A stretch of DNA of 63,082 nt, counting the filler, from Pelomyxa schiedti (lineage: Eukaryota > Protista > Evosea): assembly GCA_020536535.1 (NCBI GenBank). It is 7 parts of 7 records of this genome, joined end to end, with 100 filler letters (N's around TTAATTAATTAA, not from the genome) between each part and the next. Parts side by side here need not be neighbours in the genome. Positions count along the whole stretch, not along the records: positions 1 to 31,797 come from JAHLWZ010000184.1; 6 more parts are not named here. One strand, written 5' to 3'. The position numbers and the translations under genes were made by a program. Positions 28,043 to 31,797 of the stretch are shown one piece after another. The stretch's first letter is position 1. Each line of letters starts with the position of its first letter. The notes below the pieces were generated by a model. The model worked only from the letters and a program-made list of their open reading frames with translations. It made no database searches and was not told the DNA's origin.

Positions 28043-31000
28043 TTATTCGACGGTAATAAGGAACAAAGTAGCTGTACACCCTGGTGGAATAAATGCAAAT
28101 GAGGTTCTTTCTTGTTCAGCCTGTGTGGAATAGTTAGTGATACACCGGCACCCCACAACCACTATTTTGTTGTTATTGTTATATGTCCCTGTTGCCCTTG
28201 TTTGAGCAACCCTGACCCTCGCTTGTACTGTATATTCCCCAGTATGAACTTCCCGCAATGTATATTCAAATGGGCCAAGTCCTGCCGGAGTTCCGGACGA
28301 AATTCTGCCTCCGGATGAGGTGTGGTTGTTCCAGATACTGCATTTCTCACCACCAGGTTCAGTAATGTGCAGCTCCACGTCCGCGGACTCGGAATTGGTC
28401 CACAGACAAATGCGGAGGTCAAGAGGAACTGCGGCCGGGGTTGGAATGAGGCCAGGCGGGATGATTTGCGCAAAGCGATACCTGCAGAGTTCCAGCCGGG
28501 CCGTGAGTTGGATTCCGAAGTCCTGGGCTCTGCATACCGCGTCACCAGTGGCTATATGGTAGAGCTCCTCCAGCATTTTAACGGCCCTCTTGTTGGTGTT
28601 GAAGTTGGAGCTCTCTGCATGGAGAAGAGATACTACGGCGTGGAGTAGTGCTTGAACTTGTTCTGGTCGTAGGTAATGTACGGCAGACCACAGTTTGGCA
28701 GTGTGTTCCCACATTCCCAGTGCTTCGCATACTGTGGCCAGCATCTGGACTGGAACGGGATCGCCTGGTGAGTCCTCAACTAGTTTACTAAGGGCAGTGA
28801 ATATGCGGTCGTACTCTGATTCAGGAAGTAGGATACTGCCATCTCTGAGTTCAGAAAACTGGTTAAGGAGAGTTGATAAGTGGAATTCTCCTGCAAAGTC
28901 ATTCATGCACTGCATTGGTGATCCTGACCAGAGCTTAAGCATGTAGGAGCGAATGGGAATTTCTGACTGCATAGCGAAGTTAGTACCATTTAAATTTTTG
29001 CACCTCTTTCTGTCTACTTGGGTCTGAGGTATACTGCACGACGGATGGTAGGTTGGATGTGACGGAGTGTAAGATCGAGAAGGGAGGATGGTTTGCAAAG
29101 AAGAGCGGACGACAGTGCCCATTTGGGCAAGGGTAGTTGGAATTAGTTCCGGTTCCCCAAAGCGGGAGTCATTGGTAGATATTTCTGAAGGGAGTTCGGG
29201 TTCGGGTGACAGCCAGGTTCGATCACGCAAGGTTCCATTACATTCAGCCAGCTCCCGCAATTGGCACTTTTTCCACTCATTGGTAGATTCGTCCATTGGG
29301 GTTAATAAAGGCTTAACAAGATCGGATGCCCTAGCCAGCTGCTCCTGACTATCTCCCGTCACTAGAACGTGTAGAGGCTCATCACTTGAGCTTTTAGGTG
29401 CAGAGTCCCTCGCCCTGGATCCCTCTTTGATGGAACCCTTGCCTCGTATGCTAATTTTTGCACCACTTTCAGACTCGATACGCTTTTGTGTCTTTCCACG
29501 TGGTCCAATGAGTAGACCAATGAAATTGTAATCAGGAAATTGCGCGTCCGGAATAGGTATTTTCAGTGCCAGTTTCTCAGGTTCTGGAGGGGAAAGGGCC
29601 TATTTGAACGTAAGTTAGAAGGAATAGTATTTGGCTTACATACCAGTCTTTTATCAAGAGGGATAGTATAACCTTTCCTATTTTTCCAATTTGAAATGCA
29701 TGGTGGTATCTTCCACTTCTCTAGATCATTGGATTCCACCTTCAGCTTCTTCCTTGATTTATCTTGCGGTTCAGTTACACACTCTTGGTACCCGGTGGTT
29801 ACCACTTGGGCTTCTGCTGAACCCAATCCAGTTTCCATAAAATGGGCGAACTGAGAAGGAATGGATCTCTCCTCCACAGTACCACTTGCCCACATACAGA
29901 AATTTCTCCAAAGAACTTCAGCAGCTCTTAAGGATCGCTGGGCTATTCGGTACTGCGAAATTTCTCGTTCTTTCTTACGTATCGAATTTTCTCTCATGTA
30001 TTCGGCATGCATTGTGACCTGGCTTGGATGAGGGGTCACCTGGTGGGAAAGATACTGTTCAAGTGTGAATAAGACAATGAAGGAGCATTCGGGTCCGCAT
30101 ATGCAATACTGTTGGCAAAATTCGACAATAGAAGACGTTTCTGCGTTTAGATCACGCATGTGTTCGAGCCTTAGTAACGCCCACTGTCGGGAGATTATGG
30201 AGCCGATTTTTTTCTCTCTTGAAAATTCATGTTGCAAGGGCAAAGAGAACGAATTGGTTTGAATATCCTCCCCACCCTGTACAAATTTAACCTCAATGCT
30301 TGAGTCAGAGTGAGGAAATTGTTCCACTCTTCCGCACACCAAGAATGGCTCCAATTCGGAAATTGTACTAGTGTTGCTCAGGTCTGCTGTGCAACCTTTC
30401 TGTCGTACATCAGCAGTAATCCTACTACCTTGTACTATCTCTGCAGCTTTGAGTGGCTGACAGACTGCCAAGTTGATGTATATACCCCCACTGATGCGAG
30501 AAATGGCTCTAAGAGTTGATTCATTGTGCTGTGAGGCAGTAATAGTATCACATATAGTGAAGACAGGTAAGCATCCAAAGTCAAAAGCACTCGAGTCACC
30601 AGTAGAGAGAGTATCCACACCGTCAGAAAACATAACCCAGATGTGGTAGTGGTCAGAATTGCTTCGGCACCATTTGGCAAGTAATGACAAGTCAGTGGCT
30701 CCGGAATAGTAAATCGTTTCAATTGACTCCATAAGAGTCTGTACTGGGTCTGACCTTTGCCATGAAGACCGCTTATGAATACTGCAAGAATCAAAAGTAA
30801 TAATATCAGCTGCCACAGGTCCTGCCTGCAAAATTGAAATAAGACATTCCAATTCCGATCTGTGAGAGATATGGTCTCTACTTGAAGAGCAGTCCCATAG
30901 AATCCCTATCTTTTTGGATGTAGTTCTTGATTCCGGTATTGCTTGTGGAGGACTGGTGCAGACACATAGAAAGAATGTCTCATTAAGCGTATATTCCACA

Positions 31001-31797
31001 TCCATAATAAACTTGGGAAGATTCGGTATTGTGAAGTCTAGCATACTCTCTGGAGTAGAGGACCCACTGGAGTCATATGAGAACTCCAGGAAATCTCCAG
31101 AATCAGCAACGCTGAAATGAGACAATACTTCTCTGAGTGGAGCACGTAGAGGATGATCGACTTTGACGTCGAAATGAAAAAATCTCAGCAGCTTCGAAAA
31201 AGGACTCAAGTCGAAAGGGAAAGTAAAAGAGGCACAGGCATCACGGACAGTAAGCATGTGAATTATCTCCACAGTAACCTTTTATACCAATATCAATGAG
31301 AGGAATAAACTCCTCATATCTAAAGTTAAAATTTCCTAAACAGAATTAGTACACCCAGTCAGCCAGTCACTTACAACTTATGAATTCCAAAAATGACTCG
31401 CATGTACCAACAATATTAAAACATAGCATCTACTAGTTCGATCTTTACTTTATTTCGTATCAAATAAAAACCCACCGGGAATGAACCTTTGTTATCTCGC
31501 CAGGCGCGATCGGGTACACCCTGCCCCGGAACAAGTTGGCCCCCGAGCCCGCGCACGCCCCGGCCAAGTTGGCGCCGGGGCCGCGGCCCAGGTCGGCGCC
31601 GCGCTGCTCGTGCGCCCACGCCACCCGCCCGGCGTCCGAGGCCACCACCGCGCCCTCGTGCACCCCGCCGCGCGCCGACTCCACGCGGTACCCGCACGCC
31701 GTGGCGCCGCCGGGGAGCCCCACCGTCATGACACCCCCCACGCACCGCGGCAGAGACACAACCGCTGGGCTCGGAGGGGGAGATGGAGAGGGAGAGG
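28043..31797 (-). CDS. VIT-vWA-DUF2135-type protein with in-frame SKIP/SNW motif and SF1/BBP KH-QUA2 insert; 5' truncated by contig end
   Basis: VIT-like (GLPGGATACGYRV...NLFRGRVYPIAPG), vWA MIDAS (ILWDCSSS, SGATDL, MFSDG), WKIPPCISNWKNRKGYTIPLDKRL, a 44-nt GT-AG intron at 29600-29643, [21 protein letters not shown]...QLRELAECNGTLRD, and C-terminal DLRICLWT..ADVELHITEPGGE..GGRIS..GLGPFEY (DUF2135-like). Confidence 0.82.

Follow-up and report, generated by a model that had tools for sequence, protein, structure and literature searches.

Sequence analysis of a mosaic gene in Pelomyxa schiedti that places pieces of the splicing factors SNW1 and SF1 within a bacterial-type vWA-DUF2135 scaffold

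The genome of the amoeba Pelomyxa schiedti (assembly GCA_020536535.1) contains a gene in which parts of two spliceosomal proteins are found inside a protein otherwise related to bacterial VIT-vWA-DUF2135 proteins. The gene occupies positions 28043-31797 of the window, which is the whole stretch of DNA that was analysed (63,082 nt, 7 parts of 7 records joined with filler), and lies at the end of the part from record JAHLWZ010000184.1. A preliminary description of the locus proposed that pieces of SKIP/SNW1 and SF1 had been captured into a probably horizontally acquired scaffold. The mosaic gene is carried on the minus strand and its open reading frame (ORF) coordinates can be read directly from the DNA, with no need for a gene model. 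In the direction of transcription, its features are the following.

31487-31797, minus strand: 5' exon, putatively encoding a C-terminal segment of a diverged VIT domain (BLASTP to the VIT region of paralogue P0003).
31279-31486, minus strand: intron of 208 nt, GT..AG (sequence and deposited protein).
29878-31278, minus strand: ITIH-like vWA domain and conserved post-vWA region (phmmer relatives, alignments, and a profile match to ITIH4).
29644-29754, minus strand: 37-residue fragment of SKIP/SNW1/Prp45 that includes the SNWKN motif (Pfam SKIP_SNW).
29600-29643, minus strand: intron of 44 nt, GTATGT..CTAAC..AG, phase 0 on both sides, between the borrowed pieces (sequence and deposited model).
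29222-29572, minus strand: complete SF1/BBP-type KH-QUA2 with the GPRG loop and QUA2 helix kept (Pfam and PDB).
28880-29221, minus strand: Pro/Ser/Thr-rich linker (composition; no significant Pfam match).
28481-28879, minus strand: TPR-like helical repeat of seven helices (AlphaFold2, Foldseek, and homologue P0001).
28046-28423, minus strand: DUF2135-type beta-sandwich C terminus (hhalign and AlphaFold2 strands), with EPGGEKC at 28340-28360 and GLGPFEY at 28262-28282.

The first ORF consists of 545 codons (29644-31278, minus strand) and encodes the ITIH-like vWA region followed, at its end and in the same frame, by the SNW piece. The preliminary description placed the SNW signature correctly after the vWA region, and the Pfam SKIP_SNW match at 29644-29754 falls within this ORF. 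The second ORF (28046-29599, minus strand, 518 codons) begins with the KH-QUA2 piece and proceeds through the TPR-like region to the DUF2135-type tail, with the stop codon at 28043-28045. The 44-nt intron between the two ORFs is as clean as had been described, and its retention would introduce a stop codon after 26 codons. An exhaustive phmmer search identified a deposited protein of 1131 residues that is 100% identical, KAH3765894.1, annotated as "Branchpoint-bridging protein [Pelomyxa schiedti]". The deposited model splices the identical 44-nt intron and contains an extra 5' exon (31487-31729, with the ATG at 31729), which is joined via the 208-nt intron. The frame of this exon is open up to the contig end at 31797, and thus the gene is truncated at its 5' end. 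The model also splices out 39 nt near the 3' end (28121-28159, minus strand), a segment that has GT..AG boundaries, contains CTAAC, and is a multiple of three in length. Because the 13 residues encoded by this segment are conserved in paralogues, the 39-nt intron is doubtful and is probably false or optional.

The base composition of the gene changes sharply at its 5' end. The VIT-coding exon (31487-31797) is 78% G+C, as compared to 44-49% in the remaining gene, and the peptide that it encodes is rich in Ala, Gly, and Arg. A similar island of 65-77% G+C is found in the sister paralogue on contig C530 (6100-6500 of that locus). Biased gene conversion could account for the island at the VIT exon, or the island could be a property of the 5' end.

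The two borrowed pieces differ in how much of the parent domain they retain. The SNW piece (SKIP_SNW, E 2.7e-15) covers model positions 56-91 (at most 55-94) out of 158, so that about a quarter of the SNW domain, and not the full domain, is present in the mosaic protein. This quarter includes IPPCISNWKN at 29680-29709 and follows the pattern SNWKN..GYTIPLDKRL, ending in PLDKRL. The KH piece matches Pfam KH-I_KHDC4-BBP (PF22675) with an E value of 1.1e-23 over positions 2-75 of 76, and carries the IGPRG loop at 29495-29509. Its best PDB matches are the KH-QUA2 structures of human SF1 and yeast BBP (1k1g, 7vpx, and 4wal, E ~1e-29). The alignment to 1k1g (E 1.6e-29) extends over both the GPRG loop and the QUA2 helix, in agreement with the earlier assignment of an SF1/BBP KH-QUA2 with its GPRG intact.

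The pieces were also attributed to two unrelated splicing genes, and canonical copies of both are present elsewhere in the same genome, SNW1 on contig C423 and SF1 on contig C237. The resident SF1 has an N-terminal U2AF-binding region and a CCHC zinc knuckle. The SNW piece is 69% identical to the resident SNW1 at the protein level and 80% identical at the DNA level over 65 nt; it is too short for its source lineage to be traced. Between the KH copy and the resident SF1, identity is 67% for protein, 61% for DNA, and 33% at third codon positions, with a proportion of synonymous differences (pS) of 0.85, which is saturated, and a nonsynonymous divergence (dN) of 0.31. Since synonymous sites are saturated at this dN, the comparison indicates that the KH copy is ancient and has been under long purifying selection, rather than being a recent chimera. 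Stretches that are common to the KH copy and the resident SF1 but are not in human or yeast SF1, for example, around TPMDES.NEWKK and GTLRDRTW, show that the copy is of endogenous origin, from the amoeba's own SF1 lineage. In addition, the resident SF1 has a 47-nt phase-0 intron located no more than ~2 codons from the site equivalent to the mosaic's 44-nt intron. This neighbouring intron position fits, without proving, the capture of the KH-QUA2 exon at the DNA level.

The same divergence bears on whether the mosaic could be an artefact, that is, an amplification or assembly chimera or the fusion of neighbouring genes in a gene model. We consider this very improbable, even though the source of the assembly was multiple-displacement-amplified single cells, RNA reads were used to scaffold it, and gene models were refined with transcript data (PMC8887013), and even though the contig ends within the gene and the 5' exon departs strongly in G+C content. 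At the DNA level, the pieces are no more than 61-80% identical to the resident SF1 and SNW1 genes, which, together with the saturated synonymous sites of the KH copy, rules out the amplification chimera that the preliminary description had raised. Moreover, the pieces are in frame within scaffold ORFs, independently of gene models; the same design recurs on many separate contigs, in one case as a single ORF of 1249 codons; and the G+C-rich VIT exon recurs in the C530 paralogue.

The relationships of the scaffold were determined from its head (the vWA side) and its tail (the TPR and DUF2135 side). A phmmer search with the head returned 628 relatives at E ≤0.001, and the relatives that were scanned have VIT at the start, DUF2135 at the end, and often TPR ahead of the tail. 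The metal-ion-dependent adhesion site (MIDAS) residues are intact in the mosaic gene, with WDCSSS at 30880-30897, the Thr of YYSGATD (30691-30711), and the Asp of FSDGVD (30613-30630). The corresponding columns (DxSxS, T, and D) are invariant in two head alignments that include the mosaic gene, hereafter the C184 gene. A head profile with this gene as its first sequence matches the vWA and post-vWA regions of human ITIH4 (9c4f) with an E value of 1.3e-10. For the tail, hhalign of Pelomyxa tails against genuine DUF2135 tails gave a probability of 99.5% (E 8.9e-23). The AlphaFold2 model of the tail (mean predicted local distance difference test score 84.6, predicted template modelling score 0.85) consists of seven TPR-like helices and then a beta-sandwich, so that the continuation into helical repeats and a DUF2135-like end, which had been read from the ORF, holds up. 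Foldseek with this model retrieved TPR proteins at a probability of ~1.0 but with E values above 0.01; against the PDB nothing was found at E ≤0.001, and only TPR and generic beta-sandwich likenesses were seen. The homologue P0001 contains TPR Pfam families, and in the ESM Atlas every one of the nearest clusters is a bacterial VIT+DUF2135 family.

The VIT part is the least complete portion of the scaffold. Only its C-terminal part is on the contig, and this putative VIT segment has a BLASTP match (E 4e-5 over 30 residues) to the Pfam-positive VIT of paralogue P0003; Pfam VIT is detected in paralogues. Direct Pfam scans of the C184 head, tail, and VIT exon gave no VIT, vWA, or DUF2135 hit, even at E values up to 10. 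Scans of each segment detect SNW and KH directly; the vWA and DUF2135 membership of the C184 protein is shown via homologues and profiles, as is, more tentatively, that of the VIT part. The proposed bacterial-type VIT-vWA-DUF2135 scaffold is supported in its vWA and DUF2135 parts and only partially in its VIT part. Judged by these profiles, the head and tail belong to an otherwise almost entirely bacterial family, and the scaffold was likely acquired horizontally from bacteria. By eye, the Pelomyxa paralogues have no hydrophobic leader or signal peptide, whereas the bacterial members have one (the start of the C184 protein is off the contig).

The C184 gene is one of many in this genome. The tail profile matches ~28 contigs, and the family loci overall are distributed over about 25-30 contigs; the statements below are based on the 13 of about 25-30 loci that were examined. 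A FastTree phylogeny of the head region, which is unrooted, carries SH-like (Shimodaira-Hasegawa) support only, and has taxon names on a minority of its rows, places eight deposited Pelomyxa proteins in one clade with a support of 97. The neighbouring clade consists of one rotifer protein and one EukProt protein, neither of which has host-protein inserts. The distance from head to tail is 467-960 residues in Pelomyxa versus ~250 in most bacterial members. Paralogues carry the following pieces in this middle region.

C184: SNW1 peptide and SF1 KH-QUA2 (Pfam).
C530: Prp6 N-terminal signature motif (PRP1_N), within a single 1249-codon ORF.
C469: degenerate Prp6-like motif (pairwise alignment); no Pfam-recognisable insert.
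C815: half of a G-patch and an MFAP1 motif, both over the Pfam cut-offs.
C919 and C266: nearly whole actin, 47-48% identical to roughly 20 resident actins.
C923: tubulin GTPase-domain fragment, positions 89-188 of 190.
C1277: synaptobrevin SNARE motif and a Rab1/Ypt1-like domain with the P-loop missing and the switch II Gln changed to Asn.
KAH3760613.1: complete J-domain.
C954: degenerate Ras-like domain in the same ORF as the TPR start.
C907 and C1089: about seven heptads of the RNA polymerase II C-terminal domain (CTD).
C757: start of ubiquitin, a weak, below-cutoff Pfam hit that is clear by eye.

Every insert is flanked by scaffold parts on the same strand, either in single ORFs or in ordered exons, and many inserts are incomplete or degenerate. 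The paralogues with two inserts are thematically coherent: two of them combine two splicing pieces, and one combines a SNARE with a Rab. None of the bacterial members examined has pieces of eukaryotic housekeeping proteins. Taken together, these data show that the C184 gene is a real, old, and intact mosaic in a Pelomyxa-specific clade. The family to which it belongs is characterised, by the same kind of evidence, by a variable cassette of host-protein pieces, many of which are too incomplete or degenerate to do the parent's job.

Several points concern the records of this family rather than its biology. C907 and C1089, which appear to hold one and the same CTD-heptad paralogue, have identical profile-hit scores at matching offsets and are probably haplotigs or an assembly duplicate. 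The automatic GenBank names of paralogues (P0002, P0006, P0008, P0029, P0095, and P0155) follow the insert or a stray bacterial hit, and include Branchpoint-bridging protein, non-muscle actin 6.2, actin family, Tubulin beta chain, TonB-dependent receptor, and YfaP family protein. Such insert-based names can corrupt gene inventories and phylogenies of Archamoebae. A search of the literature on DUF2135, integrated decoys in amoebae, and VIT in Mastigamoeba gave no published description of this family or its inserts. The family looks undescribed, but the gene itself had already been deposited under its misleading automatic name.

The content of the middle region could, in principle, be a by-product of exon shuffling or retroposition, in which pieces of abundant conserved genes arrived in a disordered middle that tolerates insertions and have no function. 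The retention of the pieces makes this improbable. At the KH copy, synonymous sites are saturated, yet 67% protein identity and an intact frame have been kept; the parts that are retained are the most conserved motifs of the parent proteins, and co-inserted pieces are thematically coherent. Furthermore, the core of the Prp6-like motif is kept in both C530 and C469, paralogues that are only ~37% identical. A functionless mosaic would agree with a middle that is variable in length and partly low-complexity, with paralogues that have no recognisable insert, and with the intron beside the KH piece, whose position near that of the resident SF1 intron fits exon capture at the DNA level.

Our current hypothesis, which we hold with evenly balanced confidence, is that the middle works as a display cassette for baits or decoys. 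Each piece on display would imitate surfaces of an authentic host protein, and molecules that bind, modify, or cut that host protein would be drawn to the scaffold protein in its place. Effectors of intracellular bacteria or viruses would be the most probable candidates for such molecules, and the vWA-TPR-DUF2135 scaffold would trap the effector or report the event, with the C184 paralogue presenting spliceosome baits. We favour this reading because the position of the insert is fixed while its content varies, because the pieces are fragments or degenerate copies that have long been retained, and because the inserts of each paralogue are thematically coherent. The lack of signal peptides in the Pelomyxa members also speaks for it. 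It is further favoured by the identity of the displayed proteins, since effectors of bacteria and viruses classically target actin, tubulin, Rab1, SNAREs (R-SNAREs in the present case), ubiquitin, and the nuclear RNA machinery. Pelomyxa cells are packed with prokaryotes (PMC10579272). The preliminary description had offered integrated decoys as one of two options, the other being a new RNA-binding regulator. The decoy option gains support from the paralogues that carry other host pieces at the same position, and the decoy function itself is a reading of that pattern.

A number of observations weigh against a display cassette. The scaffold carries no known signalling or executioner domain. Two of the 13 examined paralogues, C469 and C531, have no Pfam-recognisable insert, and for C757 the only insert hit is the below-cutoff ubiquitin. 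The KH-QUA2, J-domain, and actin inserts are complete domains that are possibly functional rather than decoys.

In the main rival reading, the scaffold does the work and the pieces serve as addresses that dock each paralogue onto one cellular machine. For the C184 protein, KH-QUA2 would bind branch-point RNA and the SNW peptide would bind the spliceosome core, and the protein would modulate early and catalytic steps of the spliceosome, or compete with them. The KH-QUA2 is indeed complete, with its GPRG loop and QUA2 helix, and scores 106 bits against human SF1, where the resident SF1 reaches 126 bits. In addition, the inserts correspond to known interaction motifs, with one machine per paralogue, and the Pelomyxa members have no signal peptide. 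Even so, and although the sequence by itself agrees with either reading, we regard a docking role as possible but unlikely. Many of the fragments, such as half of a G-patch, a Rab without its P-loop, a third of the tubulin GTPase domain, and peptides of 32-40 residues, could only compete with essential factors. Moreover, a single scaffold activity of use to the spliceosome, to actin and microtubules, in vesicle fusion, and on the RNA polymerase II tail is hard to imagine.

Returning to the display of baits or decoys, a broader proposal can be put forward tentatively. Pelomyxa, and perhaps other amoebae, may have an unrecognised intracellular surveillance family in which a bacterial VIT-vWA-TPR-DUF2135 scaffold, obtained by gene transfer, carries swappable mimics of effector targets, and C184 would be the member that guards the spliceosome. 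The mimics would comprise spliceosome parts, the RNA polymerase II CTD, actin, tubulin, Rab1, R-SNARE, ubiquitin, and the J-domain, and by analogy the family might be a non-NLR counterpart of the integrated-decoy receptors of plants. To our knowledge, integrated decoys have so far been a hallmark of plant NLR receptors. If the proposal is true, a free-living amoeba that teems with prokaryotic partners would use a second, unrelated scaffold in the same way, which would suggest that bait display has evolved repeatedly. The inserts would also amount to a ready list of the machines, the spliceosome and the RNA polymerase II tail among them, that amoebal pathogens or symbionts attack. The large bacterial VIT-DUF2135 family would receive its first testable role.

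The remainder of the window and the genome provide further observations. A second VIT locus is located at 14468-14825 (plus strand) in two exons, with Pfam VIT E values of 4e-17 and 5e-8. Neither the head nor the tail profile of the TPR-DUF2135 scaffold family matches it, and the ORFs downstream of it have no Pfam hits beyond a WH2 motif at 17057-17719 that stays below threshold. The 52-Mb assembly contains at least 40 scattered VIT-domain loci (53 matches). Because most of the VIT loci that were fetched fall outside the TPR-DUF2135 scaffold family, with ORFs that lack informative Pfam hits, Pelomyxa has several expanded VIT families. Elsewhere in the window, a 666-codon ORF at 19098-21098 (plus strand) encodes ankyrin repeats and lies in a locally G+C-rich stretch (57% at 19-20 kb), and an exon at 23471-24082 (plus strand) encodes AAA-lid and Vps4 C-terminal domains of a Vps4/katanin-type ATPase gene. 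Outside Pelomyxa, the scaffold occurs in about ten copies in the bdelloid rotifer Rotaria sordida (P0150 cluster), with DUF2135 followed by a ZZ zinc finger; this rotifer appears to be another eukaryote that has taken up and modified the bacterial scaffold family.

Comparison with known systems groups the mosaic protein with the bacterial VIT-vWA-TPR-DUF2135 proteins, which are annotated as 'VIT domain-containing protein', 'DUF2135/YfaP family', or 'Ca-activated chloride channel homolog'. These have homologous heads and tails in the same order, and the MIDAS residues and DUF2135 signature are conserved in them as in Pelomyxa. The bacterial members differ in having a signal peptide and a middle of ~250 residues that contains TPR only or sometimes CarboxypepD_reg, whereas the Pelomyxa middle is longer and contains host pieces. 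The eukaryotic VIT-vWA proteins ITIH, PARP4, and VWA5A, of which the ITIH proteins are secreted, are related through the vWA and post-vWA regions (the ITIH4 match given above), but are without the TPR-DUF2135 tail and without host-protein inserts.

Neither parent of the borrowed pieces accounts for the whole protein. The KH-QUA2 is about 50% identical to human SF1, with the higher identity to the resident Pelomyxa SF1 noted above. The mosaic, however, lacks the N-terminal U2AF65-binding region of SF1/BBP/Msl5 and has the SNW piece and the vWA scaffold upstream of KH instead. At the other end, homology stops just ahead of the resident SF1 CCHC knuckle, where the mosaic has its Pro/Ser linker. 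An SF1 orthologue is therefore ruled out by the missing U2AF-binding region and zinc knuckle, and for the same reason the GenBank name 'Branchpoint-bridging protein' is wrong for the protein as a whole. With SNW1/SKIP/Prp45, whose full gene is on C423, the mosaic has in common the invariant peptide described above; an SNW1 orthologue is ruled out as well, since only a quarter of the domain is present.

Three systems offer parallels for the proposed display of host-protein pieces. For the vWA-MoxR ternary conflict systems of prokaryotes, it has been proposed that cellular enzymes in inactive copies act as decoys (Kaur et al., eLife 2020, PMC7159879). They are a precedent for vWA-based decoys, although the Pelomyxa gene has no MoxR partner or operon context. 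The analogy between the Pelomyxa middle and the bait region of alpha-2-macroglobulin is conceptual only; DUF2135 is the YfaP domain, with the E. coli yfaP gene presumably located in the alpha-2-macroglobulin (yfaS) operon, and the DUF2135 model matches E. coli. The plant NLR receptors with integrated domains (such as RRS1-WRKY and RGA5/Pik-1-HMA) have an unrelated scaffold, as Pfam scans of family members found no NB-ARC, LRR, TIR, or CC, and the likeness is in design only. In that design, a constant scaffold likewise carries varying host-derived domains at a fixed place across paralogues, and the integrated domains of the plant receptors are copies of host proteins that pathogens target.

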